DNA of 64,000 bases from Anthoceros angustus (taxonomy: Eukaryota; Plantae; Anthocerotophyta). Below the pieces are notes generated by a model. The model did not search any database, was not told the origin of the DNA, and saw nothing but the letters and a program-made list of their open reading frames with translations. The position numbers were made by a program, and so were the translations under genes. Location: NCBI GenBank assembly GCA_010909165.1, contig MU008156.1:124001-188000 (forward strand). Direction: 5' to 3'. This document shows positions 12,005 to 53,773 of this stretch, piece by piece (positions within the stretch are counted from its first letter, which is position 1; the number at the start of each line of letters is the position of its first letter).

Positions 12005-12052
12005 TGGCCTGCGTCTCAATCTCGATTCCGACGGAGATTGAGACGCAGGCCA
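12005..12052. other. Perfect 19-bp inverted repeat with 10-nt loop
   Basis: tggcctgcgtctcaatctc (12005-12023) and gagattgagacgcaggcca (12034-12052) are exact reverse complements. Confidence 0.9.
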
Positions 12053-31341: not shown

Positions 31342-32870
31342 CTATTTCAGGAAGAGTGACGGGTGCAACTTCAAGGTCACATACACCAAAGTCAGCAAGA
31401 CCGGTACCTCAATTCAGGGGCCAATTGTCGCAGCCAATGCCTCTTGGGAGTCTATGCCAAAGCTACCCACGGCCATGGCTATGTCAAGCTCAAAACTGTT
31501 GCTGGAAGCAGTGAAGGACTGAGTAACAGCTTCTCCATAAGGGATGTCCAGATGCCGACACAGCCATACTGAAGAGAAGAAAACGATTGTGAAGTACAGC
31601 ATGGGGACAGCTACTCTTACCACATTGCCGATGTGATCAACAATTTGATGAGCTTGAATGGAGAACATCACAACAATAGTGTATAACAAGCCAATGACTC
31701 ATGAGAGCCCAGGGCGCTATGAAGAGAATGAACTTGGTGTCGTACCACTTTTTGCCGACAGTGTAGCGTAGGGAGTACCGTGTGATGATTCCAGCAACCA
31801 GAGGAATGCCAAGGAGAAGAAGCACCCTTCTGGCGTAATCCCAGGCACCCACATGAATGCCCTTGCCTCTGGACACCACTTTAAGAAAGAAGAGAGAATG
31901 TGGAGTGTACAACACCATCTGCATCACAGAATTTATGGCCACCAGTATGGCACACAGCTGTCCATCTCCCTTGGCCAGTTCATTCCATATGAGAACCATG
32001 GCAATGCATCTGGCAATGCCAACCAAAATAACCCCGGCCCTGTAGTGCTCACGATTCGGGAGTGTGGCCCAAGCAAGACCTGTCATGAGTGCAGGGCCTA
32101 CAAGCCAATTCAGGATGAGGCTCAACACCACATTTCAAGCAAGACGGCCACCCCCTGACCATCTTATAAAGAACTTCGCACCGAACTTTGCACAGAACTG
32201 GATACATCATAACCCAGAGTCCCAAGGCATTAGGAGGAGATACGGATGCCAGTTTCACCACCTGGAGCCTCTTCTTGATTCCTTTCACTTCCACAAGTAT
32301 CCAGAAGAAGAGGTACCGATCTAGCAAAGACTGCTTCTTGAACAGGCCTCCCGCAGCTGCCAAGAATACTAATACCATGCTAGCCGAACAAACGTATGCG
32401 AAATGACTATGTAGCAGATTTTCAGATCACAAACAACTGCGATCTTTCATCAAATGCTCCACCGGCGGCGGCTTCGTCAGCTCCAGGCTTTCCAACAACT
32501 TCGCACAAAAGCTCCCTTCCATTTGGTAGCAATACTGAGACATTCGTTTGCTCATCAAACGCCTGCTAACATGGACCGAGAGCAATTACCAAATACCAGT
32601 GCCCAGCCGGAATGTGGGCCAAAGTTGCACATTGTCACTGATAACACTTGAATGATGTTCGAAACTCACCTCTTTGCTGGTGCAACAATGAAATTCTGAA
32701 CAATCCTCTTCGGGCTGAGCGGGAACGTCGGCCAAAGTTGAACCACTTGGTACAAATCTGCAGCGCAAACCGCCATCTGCGGTCTGAACGATGAAGGAGG
32801 CAAGGTGCGGGGCAACGGGGCGGCAAAGATCCTCCACCTCATTGCTTTCAAGCCCAGCGTAGGAGGCCAT
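31342..32870 (-). pseudogene. ACR3: Degenerate ACR3 arsenite transporter paralogue (exons 32870-32670, 32562-32463, 32356-31342)
   Basis: Retains LDRY, WVMMYPVLCKV, ARCIAMV, EVPVL. Versus the intact copy: ~10-codon deletion in TM1, frameshift plus CGA>TGA at 32135-32137, 7-nt insertion near 31700, NNFE>NSFE, and a stop at GP*IEVP. Confidence 0.88.
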
Positions 32871-33988
32871 AACGGCAACGGAATGCTGCCTTCCGTATGC
32901 CTGAGGACTCCAGGAATCCGTCACGTTGCCGAAGCCTGCACGGTTCGCACCATACACAAGTGGGATGGAGGCCAGAAACCCCGCTTGGAGCAAAGGTCAT
33001 CAGCAAAGTAGACCATCTGCAAACTCGCTTGCAGAATTCAGGTCCGCCACCCAACATTTTGAAGTCTTGGTGAGAAAGCAAATTGACTGCCTTCCTTGAA
33101 ATCGGATCTACGAGCAGGCATATCAAATGCTTCGAACCAAGCGATGGTGCTCCGGACACTACAAAACTGTGACGAACACAAGTTCACAACGGCTGCCTGT
33201 ACGAGACCTCTGGAACTGATCCCCTTTCCTCCTGATGCCATGAATTCGCTATCCACACTCTCCATAGTTCTTGTCCGAGCAGCCAACCGTCGCCACTCTT
33301 TGGTTGGTCCAGCCAGGATTTCGGCCCGGCGGCAGAGATGACCAGATGCAGCCACTTGAAAACAAAGGCAAACACAAAAATTTACATCCTGAAGAGAACT
33401 AAACCAATGGTGTGGGGCAAGAGAGGGCGACTTGATTCAAGGTATCTATGGTAGCATCATCAGCAAACATCCTGCCATGCATGCTCCGCCTTGACCGATA
33501 AACTGTGAAGTTGCTCCCATACTGTCAGTCATGTAACAGCATTCGCTGCATCCATTCCGGAGCCAAAAGGTACAAACGCTCTTACCATGTGACAGTTGGA
33601 TTCGAGTTCCTTGAGAACCAAGGGCAACATAGAAATTCATTCTACCCACCCAACTTCGACTCCGATTCGGGTTGCATCACCCACGAGTGTGCTGCGATTG
33701 CCGATCTGGCGTACAAGTTCCAGCCCCAGGCGATCTATGGAGATCAGGCAACCAGGGCTACAACTGTCACAAGTGCTTCGTCAATCTGTTGGAGTGCGCA
33801 GGATTAAGAAAACATTTGTCGGCTCGTTTGGCTGAAGCCTGAGGATGGCTGCGCTTCTTCCGCGTTTATGTTCTCTTGATCCTTATCTCCTTCAATCGAT
33901 TGGTTCTGACAAGCCTCAATAATGTCGCGGGCTGGCGTCTCCAACGTTTGCCCGACTCTGGGACCTTCAGTCTCTGAGGCCGGAAGCC

Positions 33989-35162
33989 ATGAGGACGGTG
34001 TCGTTGCTCTCCGCTTTGCTCGCCTGCTGCCTCTTCACAGTTGGGGGAGCATGGTGCAGGAAACCCCTGTTGGCAGCTGGCCTGGACGATGCGGTGTTGA
34101 GACCGACATTCGAGAAAATTCCAGGCAAGACGTACGCAATCTGGCAGATTCCGCCGTCCCCTGTGGCTGTCATGTTTGTGGGGCACGGGGCAAACCATGG
34201 GTCGGAACAGTTCTGGGACTTCAGCCCTAGCTGCATCATATGCTCGCCGCTGCCGGAAGAGCGGGCCATCATCAAGGCTGCCCTGGCCCGGGGCTATGCT
34301 GTCATCACTGTCCAGGCTGTCACAAAATGGAACCTGAGCACCGACCTGGACACAAACCCTGATTTTCTCATGGTTTCGGGCTTTCTGCAGTCGTGGAGGA
34401 AGGAGCACAGTTTGGACAGCCTTCCATTCACTATCTGGGGGCTTTCTAGAGGAGGAGACTTTGGCACCGTGCTGGCCTTGGGTGTGAAAACCAGTGGCAT
34501 CGTGCTGATGATCTGCCGGGGAGGAGATGATGCTATCCAGACGGCTGCTCTCGGAGGGGGCTTGTTCCCTTACCCCCAACTGCTCTTCATTCATGTCAGT
34601 GCCCCAGTTCTAAAGAGCTGATCGTCCTTCATCTGTTCTTACAAGCTTCCTCAAGATTGTTTCTTGGCCTCGAGCCGATTCTGACTTTGTGACCTGTTTG
34701 ATGCAGATGCCCAAGGATACCTTCTCAGGTGAGCTTATACAGGAGCGCTTAGAGCTGCTGTCCAGCAAAGGGATAGTCGCTGGTGACATAAAATGCTACC
34801 CTTTCCCTATCTACGAATCCTTCTTCACAGAGAGGATTCCTGGCTTGAGCTTCAACGTTTCATCCCACATCTTCAAGACACTGGAAGCAAACGGTCTTCT
34901 CACGTTAGAGGGGTTTTTTAACCAGCCAGACCCAGTGGACTGGGATGTGTGGGAAACTTGGGACTTGGTCCGCTTCTTGCGATCTCTGCGGGTGCTGGAC
35001 AACGGAGGTGGGGAGTGGGTTATGAACGCAGTTGCCGAGGAGCTCAACCTGAGTTTTGGGTTTCACTGCTGCACTAGCTTGAAGTCTTCGCAGATGCTGG
35101 ATTGGCTGGACTCAACATGGCAAAATGAGCAGCAATCTGGGGCTTCTGTACAGGTTTTGTAG
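33989..35162 (+). CDS. Secreted alpha/beta-hydrolase-fold protein, tandem copy 1 (intron 34595-34706)
   Basis: Signal peptide; GHGANH, SCIICSPLPEERA, nucleophile elbow GLSRGG, H|MPKD (Asp), ELNLSFGFHCCTS (His). Confidence 0.8.
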
Positions 35163-35679
35163 TTCGGGTGCCCTTGCATGAAATCCAAATGAGTTGGGCA
35201 TTTGGGCGAACACAAAACAGTTTTGTCGATATGCAGGGGGTCAATGGTCTGCCTCCGGGCTCTACTGTAATTCTTTGTGTTGCACATTTTTTCGGCTCCT
35301 TATCACCAAACCAACTATCAATCACCGGCCTTCCTGCCATCTGACTACACACTGACATCCGCCGTCTCTCTTTCACGGGCATTGGAGGTGACTTCGTCTG
35401 CTTATGAATCCCATGTATATTAATCCGGAAGTTTTAGTGGAAAAATTCTTATTCTACAGGTGGAAACCAGGAATCTCTTGGAGCAGAGATCTTTTCCATT
35501 CACGGGAGGGTCAGTACCGACTGTCCATCCCGTGCTGACCCACGTGTGCCGGGGGACTCTGGACTCGAGCCCGCAAGTGTAGAACGAGCCCTTGTTCTGA
35601 GGCGTTTCACTCATGTCGCGGGCTGACGTCTCCAACGTTTGTCCAACTCTGGGACCCCAAGTCTCTGGGGCTGGAAGTC

Positions 35680-36855
35680 ATGGGGGCAGTGTGGGTTCTC
35701 TCCACTCTGCTCGCCTGCTGCATCTTCACAGTTGGGGCAGCATGGGGCAAGGAACGCTTGTTGGCAGCTGGCTCGGACGATGTGATGTTGGCACCGACGT
35801 TTGAGACAATTCCAGGCCAGACGTACGCAATCTGGCAGATTCCGCGGTCCCCTGTGGCTGTTATGTTTGTGGCGCACGGGGCAAACCATGGGTCGGAAAT
35901 GTTCTGGGACCGCAGCCCTAGCTGCACCATATGCTCGCCGCTGCCGGAAGAGCGGGCCATCATCAAGGCTGCACTGGCCCGGGGCTATGCTGTCATCACT
36001 GTCCAGGCCCTCACAGAATGGGACCTGAGCGCCAACCAGCACACAAACCCCGATTTTCTCATGGTCTCGGGCTTCCTGCAGGCTTGGAGGAAGGCGCACA
36101 GTTTGGACAGCCTTCCGTTTACTATCTGGGGGCTTTCTAGAGGAGGAGGCTTTGGCACCGTGCTGGCCTTGGGTGTAGAAACCAGTGGCGTTGTGGTGAT
36201 GATCTCGCGGGGAGGAGACGATGCTCTCCAGGCGGCTGCTCACGGCCGGGGCCGGTTCCCTTACCCTCAACTGCTCTTCATTTCTGTCAGTGCCCGAGTC
36301 CTAAAGCGCTGATCTTCTTCATCTGTGCCTGTAGGCTTCTTCAGGATTGTTTCTTGAGCTCGAGCTGATTCTCACTTTGTGACCTGTTTGATGCAGATGC
36401 CCAAGGATGCCGTTCTAGAAGGGGTTATTCAGGAGCGCATAGAGGTGCTGTCCAGCGAAGGGATTGTCGTTGGTGACATAAAATGCCAACCTTTCCCTAT
36501 CTACGAATCCTACTTCACAGAGAGGATTCCAGGCTTGAGCTTCAACGTTTCATCCCACATTTTCCAGGCACTGGAAGCGAACGGTTTCCTCACTCCAGAG
36601 GGCTTCCTTAACCAGCCAGCTGATCCAGTGAACTGGGACGTGTATGGACGTTGGGACTGGGTCCGCGTCTTGCGATCTCTGCGGGTGCTGGACAAGGGAG
36701 GTGGGGAGTGGGTTGTGGACGCAGTTGCCGAGGAGCTCAACCTGAGTTTTGGGTTTCACTGCTGCACTAGCTTGAAGTCTTCGGAAATGCTGGATTGGCT
36801 GGACTCAACATGGCAAAATCAGCAGCAACCTGGGGTTTCTGTACAGGTTTTGTAG
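35680..36855 (+). CDS. Secreted alpha/beta-hydrolase-fold protein, tandem copy 2 (intron 36286-36396)
   Basis: Same exon structure and motifs as copy 1 (GLSRGG, MPKD, FHCCTS); duplication period ~1.69 kb. Confidence 0.8.
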
Positions 36856-37060
36856 GTTCGGGCCCCTTGTAACAGTATTTAGTATTCTCATAGCGGAATT
36901 CTTTAGACAGCGACCTTTTCATACACTACCTACGAGTTATTAGTATCTATTAAATAACATATAATTAGTCTTAAGTAAAAATTGAACACCTAGATAGACC
37001 TTATAATGTGGTGTAATAGCCTATGCTGGTATTGAGCATGACCTTCGCTCGCATTACTAG

Positions 37061-37515
37061 CACAAAGCTATGAAATAATAGGCTAAATATACTTTAAAAC
37101 CCTGATCTAAATACCCAGCACAAAGCTATGAAATAATAGGCTAAATATACTTTAAAGCCCTGATCTAAATACCCAACCAATGGGCATGCTGCTGTGAAGA
37201 CCTCACTCAAGCTTCGAGCATGCTGCTGTGAAGACCTCACCCAAGCTTCGAGCATGCTGCTGTGAAGACCTCACCCAGGCTTCGAGGTTGCTCTTTGAGC
37301 TATGAGGAACACGCACCTCTTGTTGGGGGCTCTTGGTTGCAGGAAGAGGACTGGATTTGCGTTAGATGTTCAGTGGCAACCTGAACATGAATTATTGAAA
37401 GGTGAGTCAAGAGTGAACATGACAACCTGAATATGAATTATTGAAAGGTGAATCAAGAGTGAACATGGCAACCTGAATATGAATTATTGAAAGGTGAATC
37501 AAGAGTGAATATGGC
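37061..37515 (+). repeat. Cluster of three unrelated tandem repeats: 58 bp x2, 34 bp x3, 46 bp x3
   Basis: Units start at 37061/37119; 37184/37218/37252; 37377/37423/37469. Confidence 0.85.
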
Positions 37516-39191
37516 ATGCCGTTGGGAACATTCAAAAGTTCCACCCATTTTTTTTTTTTTGTGATGTCCCTCCTTGACACTCCAACTTCCAACTAACTGT
37601 ATCCACCGACTTAAAACTCCAACTGGCGGACGCAGCCAGTTGGCGCGTCAGCTCGACAGGGTGACCGGGGCGCGCAACCGGAAGGAATCCGCAGCCACCA
37701 TGAATCTTGCGGGAGCACTCCAGATCGGTTCGAGAGACTTGCGGACGATCTTCAGAGCCCAATGGCACAGACTCGCCGTTCACAAGCACCACCACTAGAG
37801 CACTCTGACACCGCCATCGATAATGAGGTTGCTCAACAACCTTCTTACACTATTCCTTCCGGGCGGAGTGTCATATTGACTTCAACAAATGGGATCGACT
37901 TCCGCACTGACAAGCATCCTAATGGCTTCCAGGCATACAAGGGAGGCACGGCCTCTACACCTTCGTGGAGGAGAACACGGGGAAGTCGGCCAACAACGGA
38001 CATGTTTTGCCTCCTCTGGAGCAGATGTAGCATGAGGAAGGTTTTAGTGTGTATATAGTCGGGAGGCTATGCTGTGAGTGTGCTCATGGGACCACATCAG
38101 TAGGCTTAGTAGCCGATCGGGCCTTCCGCACCCCCCGATCCCTTCCGCACTCCCGATCACGAATTCCCGGTCACCGCCCAGTCACATTGTGGAGCTAGCG
38201 CTCGAGCTGGCTGCGTCCGCCACGCCGGAGTTTTAAGTCGGTGGATTTCACCGTGAATTCCAAGGCTGAATTATTGAATTCCCAAAAACCAACCACATGT
38301 TCCTCTTGGGTAAGGCTTTTCAAAGGTATCATTCATACTGAAAAAGCGCCGACCAGCGTTATATACGTTTTGTGACACATATAACCCATTTTATGTATCT
38401 ATAAAATTTTAAAAATAAAAACGTAGTCACGTACGCTTCATTTCAAGGGCTCCTTGGGTTTTAGGCACCTCGAATGAAAGATGCCTCGAGATGCATTCCA
38501 GCGGTTCGGGGAAGGAGTTAGCTCAAGAGAGTCACGTAAGCGATGCTGAGCCGAAGTCTGAAGGTCGTCTTCATAGTCATCTTCCACTTCCTCGGATGGG
38601 GAGAGTGAAGAGCTAAAAGTTAACTAGAGCGAACATCTGGTGTCAATTTTGGTTAACATGCGCTACGAACTCTAAGCCTACGATGAACAAGCTTGCTAGT
38701 TCCTTCTGGTTGGGATTGCAGTTCATCCTTGAATCCGAACCTCTGGGAATAGAATGATCAGATTGGACTGACTCCGCACTTCGCCATTGAGAACACTCCA
38801 CAGTTCGATAGGGCATGGAACATGACCTCCAAGATAGCGAGTAATCTACAGGCAACCTGGTGAGATCTTTGGTAAAACGACTCCAACATCAGCAGAACGG
38901 GTCTTTGCAGATCCGAGGCTCCGAGCAGTGGCTACTCTTCAGGATTTCTGTGAAAGCTCGTTCTGATTGCTGACATCAAAGAGGAAGTTTGCCACCAAAA
39001 ATCTGAACATCAAATTTGCGCTCGAATCAGCCTTTGATTTACAGCAACATCTATACAGTGAGCCAAAACTGGGAAAGAAAATCCGGACGCAGCACCAAGC
39101 TTGACGTACCCAGTACTAGGTCACCAGACGTTCTCGACAGAACCAACCATGCGAGAAAACCTTCACCTGCAACCCCTCCTGTTGTCTAGAC

Positions 39192-41153
39192 TTACAGCAG
39201 CTGCTGCAAGTAACTGGCATTTGCAGCTCCAGTGCTGCGCACCAATGCTGCGAACTTACTGTCCCTTGCCAGAAGTTGCTGCGGGGTGTCAAACTCGACA
39301 AGCTGGCCATTGTCCAGTACGAGAATCCTATCACTGTCTATGATGGTGTTGAGTCTGTGAGCAATGATGAGCATGGTACAGGACCTGAACTCATCCCTGA
39401 TGGTTTTCTGGATCAGAGCATCCGTTGCCACATCCACTGCTGCAGTGGCCTCGTCAAGCACCAGGATCTTAGATCTCCGAAGCAGTGCTCTGGCGAGACT
39501 GAGAAGCTGCCTCTGGCCGACGCTGAAATTCTCACCCCCTTCCGATACCTGCATGTCCAAACCTGCGGCATTCTTCCGCACAACTTCCTTCAGATGGGAC
39601 CTTTCAAGAGCTTCCCACATATCAGAATCACTGTGCTGGCTGAAGGGATCGAGATTAAATCGGACTGTTCCTGAGAAGGGCACAGGCGACTGTGGGATGA
39701 TCCCCAAGTTTCTCCTCAGGTCAGCCAACCCGATTTTGGAGGTGTCGATGTTGTCGATCAAAATCTGCCCGCTCTCAGACTCCACTATACGGAAGAGGGC
39801 ATTCATCATGCTGGACTTGCCAGCCCCCGTCCGTCCCACGATGCCAATCTTCTCCGTCGGCCTCACAGAGAAGGACAAGCCCCTGAGAACAGGGGGCAGC
39901 TGCGGCCTGTACCTCATCACCACATCTTTGAACTGGATGGCTCCTGCTTCCGGCCAGGAAGAAGGTGGCCGGTTGTCCTCGATAACCAGAGGCGCTTCCG
40001 GGGGCACGTCGATGTAGGTCCCGACTCTTTCCACGGCATTGAAGCTGTTTTCAGCCGCACTGGCACACCTCAAGACTGCCGTCATGTAGTTGGTGATGTT
40101 CAAGGCATAGCTCAGCAGCAGACCCATCTGAGCAGCGAAGGCTGCCCGGTTAGAGGACCGGGCATTCCCCAGCACAGCCAGGACCGCTGTCATGAAGATC
40201 ATGAGCCCACCGAGGAACTCCAGGCGGATAGACAGCCATCTGTTGGAGCTCATGTTGAGCAAGGTGAAGCGCACGTTGTTGTCCATAGCAGCACCGTTTG
40301 CCTGCGCCAGTCTGTCATGCGCCTTGAAGGCCCGGATAGTCGCCAGCCCGTTCAGAGCCTCACTGAACTGCGCATACACCGGCGACCTGGACACGGAATC
40401 CAGCCGCTTCACCTCCCTGGCGGTGCTCTGGAAGTAGACGTAAGCCGCATTGAAGGCGAGGAGCAGCGGCAGCACAGCCCAGAGGGACAGCAAGCTCACG
40501 ATCCCGATGAGCACGAAGGTGGAGATGAGCTGGAAGAGGAAGGTGAGAAACAAGCTGGTGATGACGACGACGTTGCGGTCGATGTCCCCGGTGTCCCTCG
40601 CAAATCTGTTGATGATCCTGCCTATGGGGTTGGAGTGGAAGAAGGACATGGGCGCCCTGAGAATGGCCCCAAGCATGCTGTCGTGCAGCCGTCTGGCAGC
40701 AGCCAGACTGGACAGTACGAGGCAGAAGGAGGTTGCAAACATGACCAACACCTGGGTGAGGCACAGCAGTGCATAGATCCCGTTGTAGTAGTTGGTGGAA
40801 TGCGTGTGCGGCTTGGTCTCGTCCGTCCAGATGCTGAGCCAGGCGCTGCTGCAGAGCCTGACAAGCTCTGTGGCAACGTAGAGCGTGAAGAGCAGAGTCA
40901 CCACCCACATGCCTCCCATGGCGGTGCTGTATCGCCGCAGCACCTGGACGCTGATCACCCCCGTCTCCCTCTCCTCGGTGGTGACAAGCGTGGCCTTGGC
41001 CTTGGCCTGGGCCTGGGCCTGGGCCTGGGCCTTGGCCTTGGCCTTGGCCTGGGCTTCGGCTCCGGCTGCCTCCTCGTGGGCGCCTTCCTTCAGAGCGCTC
41101 CCATTCCTGGTGAGGGACGGCGGCGTGATGAGCACCCCATGGCCATGGCCGCC

Positions 41154-41194
<41 letters not shown>

Positions 41195-43770
41195 CCGGAA
41201 CATCCACATCCTGAGAGGCCCTGTCCTCCACACTCCCCGCATTCTCCATGAGCTGCTTGAACAGAGGCCCGCTTTGCAGCAGCTCCTCGAACGAGCCTTG
41301 CTCCTCCACCACCCCCTGGTGCACCAGAAACACCTTGTCGACATGGGCCAGGAAGTGCAGCTGGTTGGTGGCGAAGACGATGGTCTTCCCCTTGAGCGCC
41401 TCCTTCATGCAGCCGTCGAAGACGAGCTTGGCCACGTGGGCGTCCAGCGCGCTGAGGGGATCGTCGAACAAGTAGACGTCCGCATCGGCATACACCGCCC
41501 GCGCGATGGACACCCGCTGCTTCTGCCCGCCGCTGATGTTCACCCCGCGCTCCCCGATCTCGGTGAGGTCCCCCCCAGGAAACATGTGCAGATCATGGTC
41601 CAGCGCGCTCACCGGATGGCCCGCTCGTACCGCACGGGATCGAAGGCGCCCCGAACAGCACGTTCTCCCGCACCGTGGCATTGAAGATCCACGACACCTG
41701 CGGGACGTAGGCGACGCGGCCCCGGACGACAGCGTCGGCGCCCGCCACGGTGGAATGTCCCCGAGGATGGCGCTGAGCACGGAGGTCTTGCCCTCCCCGG
41801 TCCCGCCCACCACGGCCACGAAGCTCCCGGCCGCCACCTCCAGGCTGATGCCCGCCAGCGTGGGCGGCCTCTCCTCCTCCGCGCTCCAGGAGAAGCTGGC
41901 GTTGCGGATGCTCACGGCGGGAGGCCGGGCCCAGGGGCGGAAACGGATCCAGCGCCCGCTCCTCCGCCAGCAGCAGCTCCTGCAGCCGGGTGAGGGAGAC
42001 GTTGGCGGTGACGGCCTGGGTCACCAGGTTGGGGAAGTTGTAGAGCGGGAAGCGCAGGACGGCGAAGAGGGAGAGGGAGGTGAAGGCCTTGGCGGGCGTC
42101 AGCTCCCCGCCCAGGAACGCGTACAGCCCGAAGGCGATCACGGACACCAACACGGGCACGCTGTTGAGCAGGAAGTTGTTGACGGCGGCCAGGGAGAGCG
42201 CCTTCCGGAACCAGGACACCTCCTGGGCGCGCACCCCGCCCACCTTGTCCCGGAAGCTCTCCTCCCACACGCAGCATTTCACGATGTCCATGGCAGCCAG
42301 GATCTCGTTCATGAGCCCGATGCGGCGATCCGTGCAGTGCAGGCCCTCCTTGGTGAGGCGCTGCATCCGCTTCACCACCAGCGTCTGCACAGGGAACATG
42401 AGGAGCAGCAGGAGGGAGCCCACCAGGCACGCCACCCCGAGCTGCTGGTACAGCAGGTAGAGAGACACCCCGATGCGCAGCGGCGCGGACCACAGCCCGT
42501 GCAGCTGGTTGCACATCTGCTGGACCGCGTCCGCGTCTGCCGTCATGAGGTTGTTGATCTTCCCGGCCGTGAAGGAGCGGTCACGGTCGCGGTGGGTGAG
42601 GCGGAGGGCTTTGCGGAACACAGCCGCCACGATGGCGGATCGCGCGCGGAACCCCACCCGCATCACGTTCTGGAAGTACTGCGCCTCCGCCAGGACCCCC
42701 AGCACCTGGCCCAGGAAGATGCAGGCCGCGTAGAGGCAGCCCCGGCCCGCCGGCTCTCCCTCCTGCATGCTCTCCAGCAGCAGGCTGAGGAACACGGGGC
42801 CCACGAACTGGGACGCGTCGTTGCCGATCTTGCACAGCCCGCCCAGCACGAAGCGCGCCCTGAGCGCCTTGGCGAGCGCGCGCAGCAGCCATGGCCGCGC
42901 CCTCCCGACCTCCTCCTGCCACCGTCTCTCCAAGTCGGCGTGCAGCGCCTCCGTGCGGTCCCAGCTCTCCAGCCGCCACACGTCTCCTTCCTGGATGGGC
43001 CGCCGGAAGCCCAGCGCGATGAGCGGCGTCATCCAGCTGAAGAGCAGCCATGACAACAGCCCGGCCTTCCGCTCGGGGAACTCCCCCTTTTCCTTCTCCT
43101 TCTCCTCCCTCGCACCTTCGTCCTCCGCCGCCAGCGCCGAGTACCCCGCCTCCTGCTCCAGTCCCGGGAAGTAGGCCAGCAGCAGCAGCGCCAGGAGCAG
43201 CTGCCACCCCACCTGCGCGGCCTGTACGGCCGCAATGCGGGGCGGGAAGAAGGCGCGGAGCTGGAAGAAGTACTGCAGCCGCGTGGCCTGGGCCAGCAGG
43301 ACGTAGCACACGCCGAAGCGCAAGTACCAGCTCGCCTCCCGCACGTACGCGCGGGTCTCGGCGACCAGGACCAGCAGGACCGCTGCCCAGGCCAGGGATC
43401 CCAGCGCCAGCCCCAGCACCTCGGCCGGCGGGAGAGGCGCGCCCTCTTGCGGATCCACGCTGCTCCATCCCAGGGCCAGCTGCGATGCCGGGATGGCGGC
43501 GCACAGCAGGGCCAAGAGAAGGAGCAGAGAGTGGTGCACGCCGACGCGGCGCAAGAGGAAGCGCTGCAGGCCCGGGGCCGGGGCCAGGGCCGGGGACCGA
43601 GATACCAGCACAAGCAGACGCAGTCGCCATAGCGCCACGCCTAGGAGGACCAGGTGGGAGAGGGTGAGCACCACCGCGTCGAGCACACACGGCGTCAGGG
43701 CGCCGAACCCGTCCGCCAGCTGTGTCTCCCACACTCCCCCGGCCACAGCGCGGCAGAATGACCCACCCAT
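39192..43770 (-). CDS. ABCC1/2: ABCC/MRP transporter of the plant ABCC1/ABCC2 clade (TMD0-TMD1-NBD1-TMD2-NBD2), intronless, with 5 single-base deletions at ~41610-41935
   Basis: N-terminus [10 protein letters not shown]...[22 protein letters not shown] matches the recalled AtMRP1/2 TMD0; NBD1 [27 protein letters not shown]; NBD2 [26 protein letters not shown]; the ORF-track pieces 41593-43980 and 39192-41915 interleave across the lesions. Confidence 0.93.
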
Positions 43771-44177
43771 CGCTCCTCCTGCCTCCTCTGTCCCTGTCTC
43801 TGTCTCATCACAACACACAACGCAACTGTTTGCAATCTGCGCTTTAAAGGCGCAGCGGCTGGCAGCGGCCCGGAATTCCAGGGAAAACGGGTTAAGGCAG
43901 AGATAGGCAGGCTTGTACACAAAAAGGCTTCTTCTGGAAGGGACAAGCGCCCCGGCCGAAAAGTTGGAAAACCAGGGCACCCGCGGACCTGCCAGGCAAC
44001 AGGCCTAGCAGCTTCCTGGTTGACCCCTTGACTCCATTCCCAGGGCATGGAAACAGTAAACACAAATAAACTGTGTGTACCGCACCTACAACAAAAGGCA
44101 GCCAGCCGCCTCCTGCTACACACCTATGGAGGTGCATACATACGTACAGTGGGTGACAACACGGTACGGACTTCTAC

Positions 44178-47168
44178 TTACCGCGGTAGCAGGGAGTTGA
44201 GGTTGGCTACCGAGTAAGCAAACACGGCCATTGTCGCCGCGCAATGCTGCAGTTGCTGAGGAGACAGCTTGTCGACGGTGTCCGCAGACGTGTGGTGGTA
44301 CCTGCGCATCCCACCGGCCAACCAAAACCAGCCACAGTAAGCTGGATCCGTACGTTCACAATGACCCTTGTACAGACACACATACATACATACGCAAACA
44401 CGCACCAGAAGTAGGCGTTGTCCTGGAAGTTGGGGTCGGCGTAGGGAGGGTTATCAAACCCTGCGCACGGGTTATTGGGCTGGTTTCCCACTCGCGGGTC
44501 TAGGACCATCAGACTGCTGCCAGGCACTCCTTGCTCCGTCTGCAACCCCGTCGCCGTCAGTACGAGTCACCACCATTCACCCTGCATGATACCCTGCCTG
44601 GCTACGTGTAAGTGACGAACCCCCAAGGGATGAAAGACACACACCAGGTAAAAGATGTCCTCCCCGATGTCGGTCCCCGAGACATTCCCGGATCCAATTC
44701 CAGACAGTAGCGTCTCTCCTATCTGGTTTGCACAACATCCAACCCGCGTCCCACTACCTAGTCAGAGAGGGACAGACATGATCTTCCGATACGACGAAAG
44801 GTAGATAGGCTCCCGGCCCCACTTACATCCTTCAATATACCACGTGCCGCTTTTGAGCCTTGGAACGACACACCGTAGGGGGTAAACGTGCCCCCGTCCG
44901 ACTCCAAAGACCAGCTAGTCCTGTTCAGTTCAGAAAAGGCGGCCAGGAAAGACGATGAAACAACCGCAAACGACACCGACCTCACCGGCGCAGGGTGGCT
45001 GGCTGAATAGGATAATGACATACAGATTCGCTTCGTGTTGGTGGTTGTGCGCATACTGGATTGCGCCTTTACTCCCGTTCTCCTCGTTCACGAACAGCAC
45101 TGCACGCAGAGTTCGCTTCGGCTTGAGGCCCAATGAGCGAATAACACGGAGCACCTGCAGCCACACATTCCACCATTTCACGACACAACCAACAAACAAC
45201 GCATGTGAGACCATACCGGCAGGTAAATGCTTGCTTGCGCTACGGTGAAAGAGGCAATGGGAGACCAACCTCCCAGGAAACAAAAGCCCCACCACCATCA
45301 TCCATGGCTCCATCGGCAATGTCCCAGCTGTCCATGTGACCACCGAACACCACCAGCTCGTTTGGTAAATCACTGCCTTCGATCTCCACGATCAGGTTCC
45401 TGAAACAAAAACAAGAGACCCTGCGTATCAGGCTAGCACAGGTGATAACACACTCCAGGTGCCTCATGCTACAATCAACCATGCCACTACCTGGACAGCT
45501 GATCAGGAAGGGTGCGAGCCTGCATCAGTGCAAGGAGACTGGCTTAGCCTCCACTAGAGCTGTGACGGATTTGAGGCCATGGAACTACTTTGTGCATCCT
45601 GTCTCATGTGCATCAAAGTGTGGCAGGCAACACACCTCCATATACAGTTCAACAATCACTTCCTGGCCTCGTGCTTGCATCCTCGCAAACATCTTCGAGT
45701 CTTCTAGAGTTATAGCTGCAGCAGGTATCTCTGCCTCTGACATCGCTCCTGTGTGGGGCGTCTGCAAATAACACAATCCATGGATCAGATACAAATTAGT
45801 GGAAACTCCCCTTCGCAGCACAACATGAAACCAATCTGCTACAACTTCATGTCCACCTGCAGTCCGAAAGGTGCAATTGAACGAACGAGTACAGCTACTG
45901 CACCATACTTCTGAGCCCTCTGTGCACCCTTCGAGCGATACACAACTGTCTCCCCATACCCTTTGAACTCGACATCAAAGAGGACAATTCGACCTACAAC
46001 ACATGACAGCAATCAGAAAATGGTCATCAGCATACACAATGCGAGTATGGGGAGCACAATTGTACACATACAGGCAGTGTGAAACACTACTCACCTTTCA
46101 CTTCCAAATTCCGTTGCTCCAGCTCCTCAAAAGATGATACCACAAGAACTTTGGCAATCAGTGACTTGCCATGGGGAGTGCCCACACTCCTACCAAGACC
46201 CACAATATTCATTTTCTTCTGTCTCGGTGAAAGCAGCGTAGCATACTCTTCGCCCCGCACCCAGCAGGGTACCTTGACAGATTCTTCTTGAACTTTTAGC
46301 CCATCCTTCTCCATTTCTCCCTGTGATTCCAATTTTACGCCCAGTCAGAAATCTGAGCTGGGACTTTCCAAAGAAACTTGACCAAGGCTGTCTTTGTCTA
46401 CACCATGACCGGTGCACCTACAACAAAAGCTCATGACGCAAAGAGCACAACCTTCACCCAATCCAGTGCTCTTTCAAGTGCACTTGAACCACTGAGCCGT
46501 GGTCCGAAGGTGTCCGTCATGTAAGCCAGCCTATCGTACACCAAGCTGCTCTTCCTCCAACCAGCCACCACAAACAATCAGCCTTCAAGGCTTCTGGCTT
46601 CTGATATTATGACTTCAAATACATCTCAACAGGCATGACACACAGCGTCTGCAATTAGCAGGCAAGAACCAGTTGCACTTTGACGTAAACCACCACTGGA
46701 GGCATGCATCTGGGATTGTTGGCCTTGTCACATATGCACAAGAAGGATAAAACGCATTTCACGATGTAATACACACGGCAAAAACAGGCACCGGCATTGC
46801 AGAATGCTACGTTGTTAACGCATCACCTGGTAGAAAATGCAGCTTTGATAATGGATTCGGCATCAACTTTGTCTTGAGAAGTGACCACGCTTTCACGAAA
46901 TCCGCGCCATCTCCAGCTCGGAAGCTCAATGTACGAGCTCCCAACACAGGTCTGCGTGCGACATTGCAGCAAGCGCAATGCACAGTTATGATCAAAATTC
47001 ATCGGAGGGCAATCAGCACAAAAACTTGTTCCGGTAGACACAACGCACAACATCTAATGCACCCTAAAAACATGACAATCACCAGACACTGGGACTTACG
47101 ATCCGAAATGTAACAGATACCAGCTGCAGTTTGAGCAACGAAGCTAACAGCCCTGCAGGACAAGCCAT
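44178..47168 (-). CDS. CPQ: Carboxypeptidase Q / plasma glutamate carboxypeptidase-like M28 metallopeptidase with PA domain, multi-exon; start uncertain
   Basis: Exons: YDRLAYMTDTFGPRLSGS; VPCWVRGEE...GLGRSVGT; TPHTG...IPAAAITLED; GGHMDSWDIADGAMDDGGGAFVSWE; PKRTLRAVLFVNEENG; LESDGGTF; YFW|YHHTSADTVDKL...LLPR*. Confidence 0.9.
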
Positions 47169-48018
47169 GCATTGCCACGCTAGGAAACACCGTTTTATGA
47201 CCATAACCCCACGCAACAAACTTTCCAAGTCAAAACCAGCAGGCGCAAAAGACCTAGCCAGCTGACCAGTCCATGCCTTCCAGATCCAAACCCCTGCCAC
47301 ACTCGGCCGCAACGCTCACCAGCGCAGAGAACACAGCCAGCAACAACAGCGCCGAGAAACCAGCTAGCATTGCTGCCGCTTCCGAGTAGCAATTGGCAGT
47401 CGCCGAAGTGGCAAGGCACAACAAACTGCGGAGCAGACGAGAGAAGAAGGCCAGGAGAAATCGTGGCTCTGTGCGCAGTCCTATTTGCCGCAGTGTGTGC
47501 ACCAATGCTCAATGCCGCCTCCGTGACACTATTGTTCGAGCTCGCGGTTGGTGAGATCGCGTGCCTGCAAATCTACAAGGAAAAAGACGGCGGCCACCTC
47601 GCGGCTTGGGATCCGACAGCAACCACACACAGCAACTGTGGCGACAGGCACTCCGGAGGCACGAGTTTTGCTTCAGTGTGAACACACTTTACAAAGACCT
47701 CCGTCTTGTCCCCGCGTTCAGCGGCATCATCAGGCTCCAGGGAAACTCACTGTACATATACATATAGTATGTACATAACGCGCCAGTGAGGAGCACCATG
47801 TTAGGTCGGTAGTACACTTGTTACGCACAGAGAGTACATAGGTGGTACACAGACTTTAGAGTTAAGAACTACCTACAAACTTTAGAAAGCTAAAAAGCAA
47901 TGGGTCCTAGGGCCGCCGTTCCGTTCAAGCTCCACGCAGTGCCCCCAGCCGCCTTCACTCGTTCAGTGGAAGCGTCATATGGTCTTCTTACATGATTGAT
48001 ATATATACATTATTGGAT

Positions 48019-51000
48019 CAACAACAACAACAACAACTTTATTTATGTCCACTAAGGATGGGAGAACCATCATGGGACAGAGATAGTACAGCGTAAAAGA
48101 GGTTTAAAAAACCGAGTACACTTACGTACGTCTGAACTAGAGAAGCAGTACCTGTATGAGGGAAGCAGAAAAGAAGGCAAAGACTACAAGGAGTCCAACA
48201 AGGACTGCCGAAGATCAAGAAGCTCAGAGAGACATAGTCCAGAGAGCCTAGGAATGTGGAAAGAGAAAAATCTGCGCAGCGAGAAGCCGGCACATTCAAA
48301 AAGAAGAGAGTAACGAGACCGAATATCGGCATAGGCAGGACAATAAAAGAGGAAGTGTGATTCAGATTCAGGATCCAAGGAGCAAAGCTTGCAGATCCTA
48401 TCGTCTTGGGGAGGGGTAGGCTTGAGCCAACGGTCGGTCTCAATCCGGAGGTGGTGGGAGCTAACACGAAATTGACCTATGAGTGTGCGGAGTTTGAAGG
48501 AAAGGGGGCGAGGTGGCAGGCGGGGTAGGAAATTTACAGGGAGGATTAACTCGGAGCTCGTCTTTGTAAAAGCGGAGTCTAGAAGTGAGAGGGGAAAAGG
48601 AAGAGGGGACCGGTGAGGCGGTATCTTAATTTAAGGGCCCCGAATGGAGTGGTTGGGGGATGTGAGAAAGGGGAGTTGGGAGGAGGAGAGGCCAAGCGAG
48701 TCGAAAAAGGTTCAAACTCGAATCTTCTAAGCCGGTTGGCGGCTTGAGAAAGCCAGAAAAGAAGCTTGTGGGTCAAGATTGAGCGAGGCGGAGGACCTAA
48801 AGGCAAGGAGGAGGTAAGGGGATCCAAAATGGGATTAGCAATATCAAGGAGGTGGAGGCGGTAAAGAAAGGATGAGAGGCGAAAAAGGCCATCAAGTTCG
48901 AGGAAAGGCTGCAAATTCGTAAAGGAGGATGGGTAATGGAGTTGAGCGCTTACAAGCAATGTGAGCGGAGAAAGGAAGATTGAACCCTTTCCACCTTCGC
49001 CCAAGAAGAAGGAAAGATCCGGCCCCAAATTTCAGCCATACAAGGCGGAGGGAATTACCATAGTGTTGAACATGCTCAAGATTGATATCCCAAGATTCAT
49101 CCTCAGATAAAGAACGCGCAAAGCATGATGAGCCCATCCCCTTGGTAGCGGAGGAGGCAGAGGAGGTCCAGTTAAATTTAGGACCGAAAATAGTGATACC
49201 AGATAAGTATAGGATCGAACCATCTCCACCTCCGACCATCATAATAAAATTTGCAATCACCCTTGTAATCCCGAGTGTTGAACCGCATAATCTTGGTCTT
49301 GCAGATTGACAAAGAGACCCTTGGTTTTACAAAAAGGGATAAAACATCCAGCTTGTTTGGTTCTCCGGAATGAGATAAAGAACAATATCATCCATATAGG
49401 AGGATAGGAATACTTTAAATAGCCGAGCACCGTGGTCGCCAGATCAAGAAGCCATTCCTCAAGCTCATCAATATACAACCCAAAGAGATTTGGGGACAAA
49501 GGGTCGCCTCGCGAACGCCAAGTTGGATAGGGATCCGTGGGAAGACAAACCACGGGAGTCTTGATTCGAGCAAAGACCCTTTGTAGAGAAGGGTAGCAGC
49601 ATGCCACAAATGAGGAGGCATCTTAAGAGATTGAAGTCTGTCAAACAACTTATCCCAAGGCACAGAGTTGAAAGCACGCTTAAAGTCAACAAAACAACAG
49701 TAGACGTGCTTCTTCAGATGTCGAGCCCCTTCAACAATAGCCCGGAGGGTAAAAGATGATCCAAAGTATTCCGACCGGGGCATCTGTTATGCAATCGATC
49801 ACATCTGTTATGTAAAACCAAAGCAGAAGTCAGGAGAAGAGGAGAGACCTTTCAAGAGCCTCGTGTTGAGCAATTTCCAAGATTGATATCCACGAAGATT
49901 CATCACATAAAGAACGGCGCAAAGCACGGTGAGCCCATCCCCTTGGTAGAGGAGGCGGAGGAGGTCCAGTTAAATTTAGGACCGAAAATAGTGATACCCG
50001 ATAAGTATAGGATCGAACCATCTCCACCTCCGACCATCATAATAAAATTTGCAATCACCCTTGTAATCCCGAGTGTTGAACCGCATAATCTTGGTCTTGC
50101 AGATTGACAAAGAGACCCTTGGTTTTACAAAAAGGGATAAAACATCCAGCTTGTTTGGTTCTCCGGAATGAGATAAAGAACAATATCATCCATATAGGAG
50201 GATAGGAATACTTTAAATAGCCGAGCACCGTGGTCGCCAGATCAAGAAGCCATTCCTCAAGCTCATCAATATACAACCCAAAGAGATTTGGGGACAAAGG
50301 GTCGCCTCGCGAACGCCAAGTTGGATAGGGATCCGTGGGAAGACAAACCACGGGAGTCTTGATTCGAGCAAAGACCCTTTGTAGAGAAGGGTAGCAGCAT
50401 GCCACAAATGAGGAGGCATCTTAAGAGATTGAAGTCTGTCAAACAACTTATCCCAAGGCACAGAGTTGAAAGCACGCTTAAAGTCAACAAAACAACAGTA
50501 GACGTGCTTCTTCAGATGTCGAGCCCCTTCAACAATAGCCCGGAGGGTAAAAGATGATCCAAAGTATTCCGACCGGGGCATCTGTTATGCAATCGATCAC
50601 ATCTGTTATGTAAAACCAAAGCAGAAGTCAGGAGAAGAGGAGAGACCTTTCAAGAGCCTCGTGTTGAGCAATTTCCAAGATTGATATCCACGAAGATTCA
50701 TCACATAAAGAACGGCGCAAAGCACGGTGAGCCCATCCCCTTGGTAGAGGAGGCGGAGGAGGTCCAGTTAAATTTAGGACCGAAAATAGTGATACCCGAT
50801 AAGTATAGGATCGAACCATCTCCACCTCCGACCATCATAATAAAATTTGCAATCACCCTTGTAATCCCGAGTGTTGAACCGCATAATCTTGGTCTTGCAG
50901 ATTGACAAAGAGACCCTTGGTTTTACAAAAAGGGATAAAACATCCGATTGCTTTTGCAGGCCCTCGGAATGAGATAAAGAACAATATCATCCATATAGGA

Positions 51001-51469
51001 GGATAGGAATACTTTCAAATAGCCGAGCACCGTGGTCGCGGATCGAGAAGAAGCCATTCCTCAAGCTCATCAATATACAACCCAAAGAGATTTGGGGACA
51101 AAGGGTCGCCTCATGAGCGCCAAGTTAGATAGGGATCCGTGGGAAGACAAACCACGGGAGTGATTCGAGCAAAGACCCTTTTGTAGAGAAGGGTAGCAGC
51201 ATGCCTCATTTAGGCATCTTAAGAGATTGAAGTCTGTCAAACAACTTATCCCAAGGCACAGAGTTGAAAGCACGCTTAAAGTCAACAAAACAACAGTAGA
51301 CGTGCTTCTTCAGATGTCGAGCCCCTTCAACAATAGCCCGGAGGGTAAAAAGATGATCCAAAGTATTCCGACCGGGGCATCTGTTATGCAATCGATCACA
51401 TCTGTTATGTAAAACTAAAGCAGAAGTCAGGAGAAGAGGAGAGACCTTTCAAGAGCCTCGTGTTTGAGC
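48019..51469 (-). mobile_element. 5'-truncated LINE (same family as 17.5-21.9 kb) with a (TTG)n tail and a triplicated ~800-bp segment
   Basis: (caa)6 at 48019-48036 next to the minus-strand AATAAA; ESESHFLFYCPAYADIRSRY; RT DHLFTLRAIVE...CFVDFKRAFNSVPW...GDPLSPNLFGLYID; units start at 49077, 49878, 50676. Confidence 0.9.
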
Positions 51470-52209
51470 TTGAGAAACGAGTCCTGTGTAGACGAGTGTT
51501 GTTCTCTTCAGCGTACGCAGCATAGAGCATCAGAGCAATCGGATGAGTCCCGGAAGACTGAATGCTTCCTGCAGATCAGAGGTAGGCGCAGGTGGCCCGA
51601 CAATGGCAGGCCTCTTAGATTCTGGAGAATTCAGGTAGGCGCTTGACGATTTTGCGTACCGCGTTCTTGGCAGTCCCTGAACTGAGCCAGCAGCTACTTC
51701 AGGCGGTTTGGCGGGCCGCAAATTTCACTTGCAATGCAGGCTCTGACACTCTGAGTTCTAGTGTCGAGAACGGCAGCTGATCTGGGAGCAGCAGGAATTA
51801 AAGTACCAATTGTGAGCAGGGAAGACACAGGGTGCAAGCGGCCGGCAGAGTCTTGAATTTCGAGCTGCTTTTCAGAGCTTTCCTCGGCATGGATGACTGC
51901 AAATGGAGGTTTGCAAACTTAAGCAGTCTTTATCTTTGTCAGGCGCCCTTGAGTATTGGATCTGAAAAGATCCGGCATTTCTCTGATCTGTTGCAGGGAG
52001 CAATCGGTTCACTTTTCTGCTTCTTCGGCTGCTGTGAGGCTTTTTATCTTGGAAACCTGAGGTGAGGGAGGATGCTCCAAACTGCTGCGGTGGTCTCCTT
52101 AAAATTCGAGCTTCTCTAAAGTGTGTGATGGTGCGGCTTTATTGTACATACAGGCACGGACTCCGACAGATTTCGCAAGAGCTTGTCAGGAGAATTTTCG
52201 TTTAAAGTC

Positions 52210-53773
52210 ATGGCCGGCGACGATGAAGTTGTAATTCTTTGCCGTCCAGTTGGACAGGAGGGTGGCTCATTCAACTTTCAGGGCGGCGGTTTTGCGCTGC
52301 AACCTTATGGCAAGCGGTTCAGCTGTGGCTGAGATGCCTGCGCTGCCTGACGAAGACGCTTCAGGGCTACACTGCTGCTGTAGCTCAGAGGTGAGCTCCA
52401 AAGTTGCAATCGCCCTGGTATAGATGTAGCTTGTCAGGTGTTCGTGTCCCGTCTTGTACTTTAGAAGGACTGTGTTAGCTAACTAGTCCGACTGATGCCT
52501 TGTTTAAAGCAGGCGTTTCATCAGCACACGCAGGTATCGATCGTACTACCAGGAGGAGGGGAGCTTCTGTGCGAGGCTGTAAAACAGCCTGCACATGAGA
52601 AGACCGTTGGTAAGCCTTCGCATCTTTGTTTCTCTTGCATTGTTTGTCGGTAACGTTGAGTGATGTCTTTGTGTCCCTAATAACCACAGAGGGAAGATTT
52701 GGGCTGACTTACCACAGTGCTGCACGCTGTTGGCAGCTGTGGGACTCTTCAGGAAGTTGTCTTTGCTAGATAGGTATCTGTTTATCTGGATACTACTAGA
52801 CATGGCATTGGCACTGCTCATGGGGCACTACGTGAAAGGGATCAAGAAGAGACTTCAAACTGTGCAGCTAGCATCTGTGTCTCTACCTATTGCCGTGGGT
52901 CTGTGGGTCATGATGTATCCGGTCCTGTGCAAAGTTCGGTACGAAGTTCTTTTCAAGATGGTGAAAGCTGGGGGCCTAGGTCGAAATCTGGTATTGAGCC
53001 TCATTTTGAATTGGGTTGTAGGCCCTGCACTTATGACAGGTCTTGCCTGGGCCACGCTCCTGGATCTTGAGCACTACAGGTCAGGAGTCATTCTAGTTGG
53101 CATTGCCAGATGCATTGCCATGGTTCTCATCTGGAATGACCTGGCCAAAGGAGATGGGCAGCTTTGCGCAATATTGGTGGCTATCAATTCTGTAATGCAG
53201 ATGGTACTGTACACTCCACTTTCGCTTTTTTACCTCAAAGTCATTTCCAGAGGCAAGGGTGTTGATGTCGGTACCTGGGAAATTGCACGAAACGTGCTGC
53301 TGTTCCTCGGCATACCATTGTTTGCTGGCATCATCACAAGGTACTCCCTTCGTTACAGCATTGGACGGAAGTGGTACGACACTAAGTTCATTCCTTTCGT
53401 CGCTCCCTGGGCTCTCATTGGTTTGCTATATACAGTTTTTGTGATGTTCTCCATTCAAGCGAATCAGATCATCAACAACATCGGCGATGTGGCAAGAGTA
53501 GCTGTCCCAATGCTACTCTACTTCACAATAGTTTTCTTCTCCACAGCAGCATCATGTCGGTATCTGGGAATCCCCTACCCAGAAGCTGTCACCCAGTCAT
53601 TTACGGCATCCAGCAACAATTTTGAGCTGGCCATAGCTGTAGCTGTGGGGAGCTTTGGTATAGACTCCCAAGAAGCATTAGCTGCAACAATTGGCCCTCT
53701 GATAGAAGTGCCCGTCTTATTGATTTTAGTGTATATGACATTGAAGCTGCAGAAGACTTTGTTCGTGCGGTAA
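52210..53773 (+). CDS. ACR3: ACR3 arsenite efflux transporter (exons 52210-52390, 52513-52609, 52737-53773); one extra base in exon 1
   Basis: GLFRKLSLLDRY, SLPIAVGLWVMMYPVLCKV, GIARCIAMVLIWN (conserved Cys), ASSNNFELAIAVAVGSFGIDS, GPLIEVP; closely resembles fern PvACR3 as recalled; small exons inferred from alignment with the paralogue. Confidence 0.95.

Follow-up and report, generated by a model that had tools for sequence, protein, structure and literature searches.

Two inverted ACR3 paralogues, one of them decayed, and an intronless ABCC1/2-type transporter gene within 22 kb of hornwort-like DNA

Genes and repeats at the locus

The window, by which we mean the whole 64,000-nucleotide stretch of DNA that was analyzed, carries within ~22 kb an ACR3 pseudogene (psi-ACR3, minus strand), two hydrolase-like genes (plus), an ABCC-type transporter gene (minus), an M28-family peptidase gene (minus), and an intact ACR3 gene (plus). 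A previous reading made from the sequence alone (the sequence-only reading) had named these genes, and our analysis bears it out on gene content. The intact ACR3 that it placed at 52.2-53.8 kb lies at 52210-53773 (plus) with its transporter core complete by the TIGR00832 profile, and the ACR3 pseudogene was found at 31345-32846 (minus), with indels and in-frame stops relative to the intact copy. The proposed ABCC1/2-clade transporter occupies 39192-43770 (minus), has the architecture of a multidrug resistance protein (MRP), and has Arabidopsis ABCC2 as its top match in the PDB. The M28 gene and the two hydrolases that it named are there as well, between the ACR3 copies. The description of the ACR3 pair as head-to-head is right in the sense of a divergent orientation, the copies being 19 kb apart.

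The ABCC and intact ACR3 genes are not adjacent and have no common promoter. Their starts are 8.4 kb apart. This interval holds the two-exon M28-family gene directly upstream of ABCC (44933-45524, minus; PF04389, E=1.3e-8 and 3.3e-4), a possible retroelement remnant (48187-48630, minus) with a weak zf-RVT match below the cutoff (PF13966, E=0.0027), and three copies of a 798-bp tandem repeat (49151-51464; repeat families D1, D5, D7, and D8) that are largely 96-100% identical apart from a 300-nt block of the third copy at 76%. On the other side, psi-ACR3 sits 6.3 kb downstream of ABCC, and the interval contains the two hydrolase-like genes, recognized from their ORFs and translations and from direct repeats (D3/D4/D6) with a spacing of 1690 nt. 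The first copy, of the alpha/beta-hydrolase type, has two exons (33989-35159, plus); the second (35680-36852, plus) is its tandem duplicate, 85-91% identical at the DNA level. Pfam gives no match for either, and a language-model feature search returned only carboxylesterase/Abhydrolase_2-like leads at 0.89-0.92. When 30 further ORFs from 33-39 kb and 44-49 kb were searched with Pfam, nothing beyond M28 and the weak zf-RVT match appeared. Neither a regulator gene nor a reductase gene turned up in the window, and the LMWP-type CX5R motif of arsC-type reductases is absent from it in all six frames. Beyond the intact ACR3 lie a Pet100 homologue (56266-56400, minus; 82% identity by tblastn) and, 3 kb from it, the C-terminal piece of a CHX-type cation/H+ exchanger (59386-59647, minus; 67% by tblastn and 69.5% by blastn). 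With the flanking genes included, the block comprises Dus, psi-ACR3, the hydrolases, ABCC, M28, ACR3, RRM, Pet100, WW, and CHX.

An intact and a decayed ACR3

The intact ACR3 consists of three exons defined by tblastn and translation, two small ones (52210-52390 and 52513-52609, plus) and a large one (52737-53773 within an ORF at 52730-53773, plus) that encodes the complete transporter core. The large-exon ORF scores 396.3 bits over positions 1-326 of 327 against TIGR00832, the profile of ACR3 family arsenite efflux transporters in the BART superfamily (curated cutoff 282.8 bits), and Pfam SBF gives 177 bits. Acr3 proteins of bacteria and yeast need the Cys of an R-C-x-A-M-V motif and the Glu of G-P-L-I-E-V-P for As(III) transport, and the window's protein has both (GIARCIAMVLIWN and TIGPLIEVPVL, respectively). 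It is 84% identical to its top database relative and 72-74% identical to liverwort ACR3, and in our tree it belongs to a separate clade (support 100/99) that is presumably the hornwort clade. Compared with the plant efflux transporters of the Pteris vittata PvACR3 family and Marchantia polymorpha MpACR3, it is 66-74% identical to the ACR3 proteins of ferns and liverworts and shares the RCIAMV and GPLIEVP motifs. Its N terminus has a Cys-rich extension, encoded by the two small 5′ exons, that resembles the one described for MpACR3 as an arsenic-sensing domain (bioRxiv 10.1101/2025.04.13.648538). Unlike PvACR3 and MpACR3, it falls in a clade of its own, has a decayed inverted paralogue 19 kb away, and has an exon 1 that is out of frame in the assembly. 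Judged by orthology, the window's ACR3 would be an exporter of free As(III).

The frame of exon 1 changes near 52288-52292, which may reflect a further assembly error. Were the shift real, the Cys-rich arsenic-sensing extension would be missing or truncated, and the seemingly intact exporter would itself be weakened or differently regulated. In favor of a real shift, frame 0 (MAGDDEVVILCRPV...) ends at a stop and the conserved ...LRCNL...HCCCSSE resumes in frame 1, and the pseudogene keeps exon 1 in a single frame. However, the shift falls in a run of Gs and Ts, five single-base omissions of the same assembly are proven for the nearby ABCC gene (see below), and the transporter core is complete, and we consider an impaired ACR3 unlikely.

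We characterized psi-ACR3 by tblastn in three frames and by DNA alignment to the intact copy, with which it shares about 80-83% nucleotide identity (83% being the mean column identity). Its exon 1 is still open, and the lesions are in the large exon: a 30-nt deletion in TM1, insertions of 1 and 7 nt, a 3-nt deletion, and two stops in the frame of the intact copy, with the second motif reading GP*IEVP. Since these lesions include the 30-nt deletion and the 7-nt insertion, an assembly artefact is unlikely here. Over 331 codons, the two copies differ by a dS of 0.89 with a dN/dS of 0.12. The former implies that the ACR3 duplication is old, and the latter that purifying selection acted on psi-ACR3 during most of the time since. 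A repeat search of the window showed that inverted homology between the copies is limited to the ACR3 gene itself.

Identity, integrity, and transcription of the ABCC gene

The ABCC gene was assigned from Pfam and NCBIfam profiles, best matches, the PDB match, a tree, and a read-corrected ORF. Its product matches positions 304-619 and 638-1521 of the MRP profile TIGR00957, and its N terminus aligns from residue 2 of Physcomitrium patens ABCC2, so that TMD0 is present. All of the best database matches (120/120) are named ABCC2 or ABCC2-like, and among solved structures Arabidopsis ABCC2 (9li5) scores 1096 bits, ahead of MRP1 (657), Ycf1 (580), and plant ABCC13 (554), which places the protein inside the ABCC1/2 clade as the sequence-only reading had it. 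In a tree restricted to ABCC1/2-type proteins, the topology follows the species tree and the window's gene is sister to the intronless P0121 (support 100). Because the tree tracks the species tree, the gene is vertical rather than transferred; judged by these sequence relationships, it is an orthologue of land-plant ABCC1/2. Horizontal transfer, which a GC-rich and intronless gene could bring to mind, is ruled out by the same tree and by relatives that are plant ABCC2 proteins.

The layout TMD0-TMD1-NBD1-TMD2-NBD2 is the same as in Arabidopsis ABCC1/ABCC2 and rice ABCC1, which are vacuolar pumps for As(III)-phytochelatin and glutathione conjugates, and identity over the C-terminal 800 residues is 62-67% to ABCC2 of all land-plant groups. 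Like these orthologues, the window's ABCC would most likely pump glutathione or phytochelatin conjugates, As(III)-phytochelatin included, into the vacuole. Unlike the Arabidopsis and rice genes, it is intronless and GC-rich, has a long stem branch common to one relative, and carries an insert in the NBD1-TMD2 linker. This insert (40984-41203, minus), seen in the translation, is of low complexity (Ala/Gly/His and Ala/Gln/Lys), and the repeat region was passed over in contig placement.

The sequence-only reading had not remarked on the intronless coding sequence, on the apparent frameshifts in the assembly, or on the fact that the genes are not adjacent. The coding sequence is 64-68% GC, declining from 5′ to 3′, and has no introns; the Marchantia paleacea orthologue spans 11.7 kb with many exons. 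An intronless orthologue with an open 1505-aa ORF was found in a distant relative (SRR33208241, contig L001). All introns would thus have been lost in an ancestor common to at least this one distant relative, most likely via retroposition or cDNA-mediated conversion.

In the assembly, the ABCC frame changes five times within 340 nt, and NBD1 appears frameshifted. We aligned contigs of four sequencing runs to the gene, among them X1 from the same sample and X3 and X9 from relatives (about 92% identical). The X1 contigs show 0 differences to the assembly over 39110-40983, and they add one base at each of 41644, 41751, 41918, and 41930 and at one further gap within 41590-41643. Three or four of these extra bases are also present in the X3 and X9 contigs. 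Since same-sample and relatives' contigs add single bases at these places, the frameshifts at 41590-41930 (minus) are assembly errors, namely five single-base omissions. With the five bases restored, the gene is a single 1527-aa ORF with a canonical NBD1, and the Walker, signature, and H-loop motifs are all intact. One X1 contig also joins 39002 to 39110 (CT..AC on the plus strand), which corresponds to a 107-nt GT..AG intron on the gene strand in the 3′ UTR (39003-39109, minus); an unspliced contig was seen as well. The splicing of this intron in RNA-like contigs indicates that the gene is transcribed. ABCC is therefore intact and transcribed. That it is instead a processed pseudogene, an intronless retrocopy that would leave only one working arsenic-related gene at the locus, could be read from the missing introns and the five frame changes in the assembly, but the high-depth same-sample contigs and those of two relatives carry the omitted bases, the motifs are intact, the transcript has a spliced 3′ UTR, and the distant relative has an open intronless orthologue, which makes this reading extremely improbable; the contigs of the four runs together with the rebuilt ORF rule out a pseudogene or retro-pseudogene.

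Proximity of ACR3 and ABCC

From the proximity of these genes, the sequence-only reading proposed a cluster for metalloid resistance whose members are regulated or inherited together. We find this proposal rather weak, and no positive evidence for it emerged. As a whole, the locus is probably best explained by a local ACR3 duplication and a coincidental ABCC, rather than by an arsenic cluster, and the window is probably unremarkable nuclear DNA from a hornwort-like bryophyte. On this explanation, two old, inverted ACR3 paralogues, one with an intact core and one recently decayed, would have come to lie on either side of a vertically inherited ABCC1/2 orthologue. Their 22-kb proximity would be a by-product of the local duplication in a compact, gene-dense genome, and ABCC, a housekeeping detoxification gene, would be in the ACR3 block by chance and not as part of a selected, co-regulated arsenic cluster. 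A counterpoint to coincidence is the a priori chance of finding an ABCC1/2 gene inside a 22-kb interval, which we estimate at ~2-4 x 10^-4 for 1-2 such genes and a genome size that we take, from hornwort genomes, to be about 120 Mb.

The alternative is a hornwort-specific arsenic-detoxification neighborhood in which selection has kept ACR3 and ABCC1/2 linked, either because matched alleles are inherited together or because the genes sit in one chromatin domain and are induced jointly. In its favor, the two genes are intact and belong to fitting families, the ABCC start lies within 8.4 kb of the ACR3 start, and we found no earlier description of such linkage in the literature. However, the pair is interspersed with unrelated genes and repeats and lacks a common promoter, one member of the ACR3 pair is a dead copy, and ABCC1/2, to our knowledge a broad-specificity conjugate pump in every land plant, must sit somewhere. 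The cluster idea is also post hoc: the genome spans more than a thousand windows, and the possible partners with a link to arsenic are many. The RNA-like contigs with ABCC have no arsenic treatment on record and would fit constitutive expression; a literature search turned up no RNA-seq of hornworts exposed to arsenic. Furthermore, Marchantia ACR3 is reported to be regulated at the protein level, through trafficking that arsenic drives (bioRxiv 10.1101/2025.04.13.648538).

Linkage kept beyond background synteny was not seen in the genomes compared outside hornworts (M. paleacea, Klebsormidium nitens, Calypogeia, Ceratodon, and Selaginella). ACR3 and ABCC are not linked within ±10 kb in M. paleacea and K. 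nitens, and no LMWP-type CX5R motif lies within ±10 kb of ACR3 in either. According to contig records, M. paleacea, Calypogeia, Ceratodon (chr10 versus chr1), and Selaginella each have the two genes on separate contigs or chromosomes. A hornwort cluster would nevertheless be compatible with absence in liverworts, as many metabolic clusters of plants are confined to one lineage. In the distant relative, contig L007 has ACR3 beside Pet100, and contig L001 has the order ABCC-Kelch-CHX with CHX 5 kb from the intronless ABCC. Because Pet100 and CHX are only 3 kb apart in the window, ACR3 and ABCC may share one neighborhood in SRR33208241 too, and this hint favors linkage. No ACR3 lies in the 9 kb downstream of ABCC on L001, and the two contigs share 0 15-mers, with simple repeats at the ends of both. 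At most, these short contigs suggest the usual synteny of a region.

Like the ACR1-ACR2-ACR3 cluster of yeast and the ars operons of bacteria, the window has ACR3 near another gene able to act on arsenic. Those genes are adjacent, share their regulation, and are dedicated to arsenic, whereas the partner here is a general conjugate pump with unrelated genes and repeats in between. Taken together, linkage kept by selection in hornworts appears quite unlikely. Less likely still is the fuller version, a lineage-specific arsenic block of ACR3 paralogues flanking a retro-derived intronless ABCC1/2, conserved across hornwort genera more than background synteny would predict and with its genes induced together by arsenic.

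If real, the hornwort block would be the first cluster of transporters for metalloid resistance in a land plant. If the linkage is selected, it would represent a rare plant gene cluster made of transporters for metalloid tolerance and a compact non-angiosperm gene set for the phytoremediation of arsenic or for crops low in arsenic. For now, the locus provides a record of ACR3 paralogues from the hornwort clade and of an ABCC1/2 orthologue that is intronless and expressed. The single-base omissions in the assembly can make good genes look like pseudogenes, which bears on every other pseudogene call in this genome.

Identity, reading frame and origin of the ABCC gene

Two long overlapping minus-strand ORFs (39192-41915 and 41593-43980), with ABC_membrane and ABC_tran domains, jointly span the MRP profile TIGR00957. 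The best 120 matches to the C-terminal 800 residues were all land-plant proteins (62-72% identity), and every one of these with a functional name was an ABC transporter C family member 2 or member 2-like protein. Among solved structures, Arabidopsis ABCC2 (9li5) scored 1096 bits versus ~650-657 bits for human and bovine MRP1; yeast Ycf1 and plant ABCC13 scored 580 and 554 bits. Our tree of ABCC1/2-type proteins mirrored the species tree and placed the window protein as sister (support 100) to P0121, an ABCC protein from SRR33208241, a sample of a distant relative. On this basis the window ABCC is the lineage's vertically inherited ABCC1/2 orthologue. The tree, the matches and the 9li5 score bear out the sequence-only reading, which had called the transporter ABCC1/2-type.

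In the assembly, the first nucleotide-binding domain (NBD1, 41590-41930) runs through several frames, with every shift at a short homopolymer run. We aligned Logan contigs of four sequencing runs to 38700-44400. Run X1, from the same organism and sample, was identical to the window over 39110-40983 and read one additional base behind each of 41644, 41751, 41918 and 41930, plus a fifth gap. X3 and X9, which derive from two other organisms (~92% identical), had three or four of these bases in common with X1. When the four bases and one placeholder between 41590 and 41643 were inserted, a single 1527-aa ORF resulted, extending from an ATG at 43770 to a stop at 39192 (-) and containing a canonical NBD1. 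Since the same-sample and relatives' contigs read the missing bases and the ORF is restored, the frameshifts are five single-base omissions in the assembly at short homopolymers, and we rejected genuine lesions as their cause. Before any other pseudogene call in this genome, apparent frameshifts should be checked against reads. An X1 contig also joins 39002 to 39110, skipping 107 nt bounded, in minus-strand reading, by GT at the start and AG at the finish. This joint is that of a spliced 3′UTR intron, which implies that X1 contains RNA and that the ABCC gene is transcribed.

The 4.6-kb coding sequence is one exon, along which GC content declines in the 5′ to 3′ direction, from ~68% to ~50%. 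P0121 is also encoded by a single ORF (1505 aa; 146-4663 of L001, a 13.7-kb Logan genomic contig). The orthologue of Marchantia paleacea has many introns, covering 11.7 kb and matching in more than 15 separate pieces (L004 10001-21728); introns are present in other window genes, namely ACR3, the M28 peptidase and the hydrolase-like genes. The window gene probably derived from a retrocopy or cDNA-mediated conversion that took the place of the ancestral intron-rich ABCC, an event that would have taken place before the window and P0121 species split. The linker between NBD1 and the second transmembrane domain (40984-41203, -) holds a low-complexity insert of poly-Ala, Gly/His and Ala-Gln-Lys stretches, which is missing from P0121 and at which the short-read contigs are interrupted.

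The intact ACR3 and its decayed paralogue

The intact ACR3 occupies 52210-53773 (+). In a profile search, its ORF at 52730-53773 matched the ACR3 equivalog TIGR00832 over the full length (396 bits versus a cutoff of 282.8). The closest relatives in the database were Logan or transcriptome proteins (81-84% identity), followed by liverwort, lycophyte and fern ACR3 (66-74%), which places the source among bryophytes other than the annotated liverworts and mosses. Two small 5′ exons (52210-52390 and 52513-52609) encode a Cys-rich N-terminal extension; for Marchantia ACR3, two preprints describe this extension as serving in arsenic sensing and trafficking (10.1101/2025.04.13.648538, 10.64898/2025.12.14.694196). 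Exon 1 changes frame near 52288-52292, possibly through a sixth single-base omission of the assembly.

The pseudogene (31345-32846, -) is ~80% identical in nucleotides to the intact copy, and the inverted homology is limited to the gene itself. Within its large exon, 30 nt of the first membrane span and a further 3 nt are deleted, insertions of 1 and 7 nt have been gained, and two stops occur. Over 331 comparable codons, dS was 0.89 and dN/dS 0.12, indicating an old duplication and recent decay. Both window copies and three relatives formed one clade (support 100/99), within which the dead copy clustered (96/86) with P0002 and P0003, the intact ACR3 proteins from two of these relatives. The ACR3 on L007, another SRR33208241 contig, has Pet100 as its neighbour like the window's intact copy, though the tree pairs the dead copy with P0002/P0003. 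This conflict between tree and position possibly reflects gene conversion or long-branch effects.

Proximity of ACR3 and ABCC

The sequence-only reading had proposed an arsenic-detoxification neighbourhood of ACR3, its pseudogene, the ABCC, an M28 peptidase and two hydrolases, and all of these genes were located in the window. Judged by orthology, ACR3 and the ABCC would both act in arsenic handling; no LMWP-type arsC motif was found in the window. Between the two lie M28 peptidase exons (44.9-45.5 kb, -), a weak zf-RVT match (48.2-48.6 kb; 48187-48630, -) and three copies of a 798-bp tandem repeat (49.1-51.5 kb; 49151-51464). They are thus not strict neighbours and share no common promoter. 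ACR3 is followed by an RRM gene (54.4-55.1 kb, -), Pet100 (56.3-56.4 kb; 56266-56400, -), a WW-domain ORF (57.4-58.4 kb, +) and a CHX piece (59.4-59.6 kb; 59386-59647, -).

We lean towards ordinary gene order as the explanation for this proximity. ABCC1/2 pumps are general conjugate transporters found in every land plant, so the gene must sit somewhere, and the pairing was spotted post hoc, among many conceivable arsenic-related partners and more than 1000 windows of this genome. A cluster maintained by selection for arsenic resistance appears unlikely. In its favour, exactly this pairing would have a low prior probability (roughly 2-4 x 10^-4) for a hornwort genome taken to be ~120 Mb with one or two ABCC1/2-type genes. 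Against it stand the intervening genes and repeats and the lack of linkage elsewhere: within ±10 kb, we found neither ACR3 nor M28 around M. paleacea ABCC2, and no ABCC around ACR3 of M. paleacea or Klebsormidium nitens. Contig records put ACR3 and ABCC2 on separate contigs or chromosomes in M. paleacea, Calypogeia fissa, Ceratodon purpureus (10G versus 1G) and Selaginella. Our literature search returned no paper on an ACR3-ABCC neighbourhood in plants or on arsenic genetics in hornworts.

Two short contigs, L001 and L007, came from the distant relative SRR33208241. On L001, ABCC(+) is followed by two small ORFs, Kelch(+) and CHX(-) at 9843-12293. ACR3 is absent from the 9 kb that lie downstream of this ABCC, and the L001 CHX and the window piece share 69.5% DNA identity. 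L007 carries Pet100(-) at 593-850 and then ACR3(+); the two contigs do not overlap. In the window, 2.5 kb separate Pet100 from ACR3, and 3 kb separate it from the CHX piece. Given that Pet100 lies near ACR3 and CHX near the ABCC in both, with order and orientation differing, ACR3 and the ABCC could share one region in the SRR33208241 species, and the region seems collinear, albeit with rearrangements, in these two distant relatives. Any genes of one block would be expected to show such regional collinearity, which alone would not demonstrate a selected pairing.

Other features of the window

The window is eukaryotic (GC 44-54%, with GC-rich islands). Its 798-bp units, situated between the M28 gene and ACR3 just after the weak reverse-transcriptase zinc-finger match, are 96-100% identical for the most part; the exception is a 300-nt block in the third copy, with only 76%. 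The tandem hydrolase-like genes (33.9-36.9 kb; 33989-36852, +) have two exons each, are 85-91% identical in DNA and share a GLSRGG nucleophile-elbow-like motif; they gave no Pfam match and only weak language-model similarity to carboxylesterases. Upstream lie a Dus gene (29.7-30.7 kb, -) and a PsbY polyprotein gene (27.4-28.5 kb, +). The latter is a single 354-aa ORF (27429-28493) in which direct repeats of 207-210 nt carry four PsbY domains, more than the two units of the Arabidopsis polyprotein.
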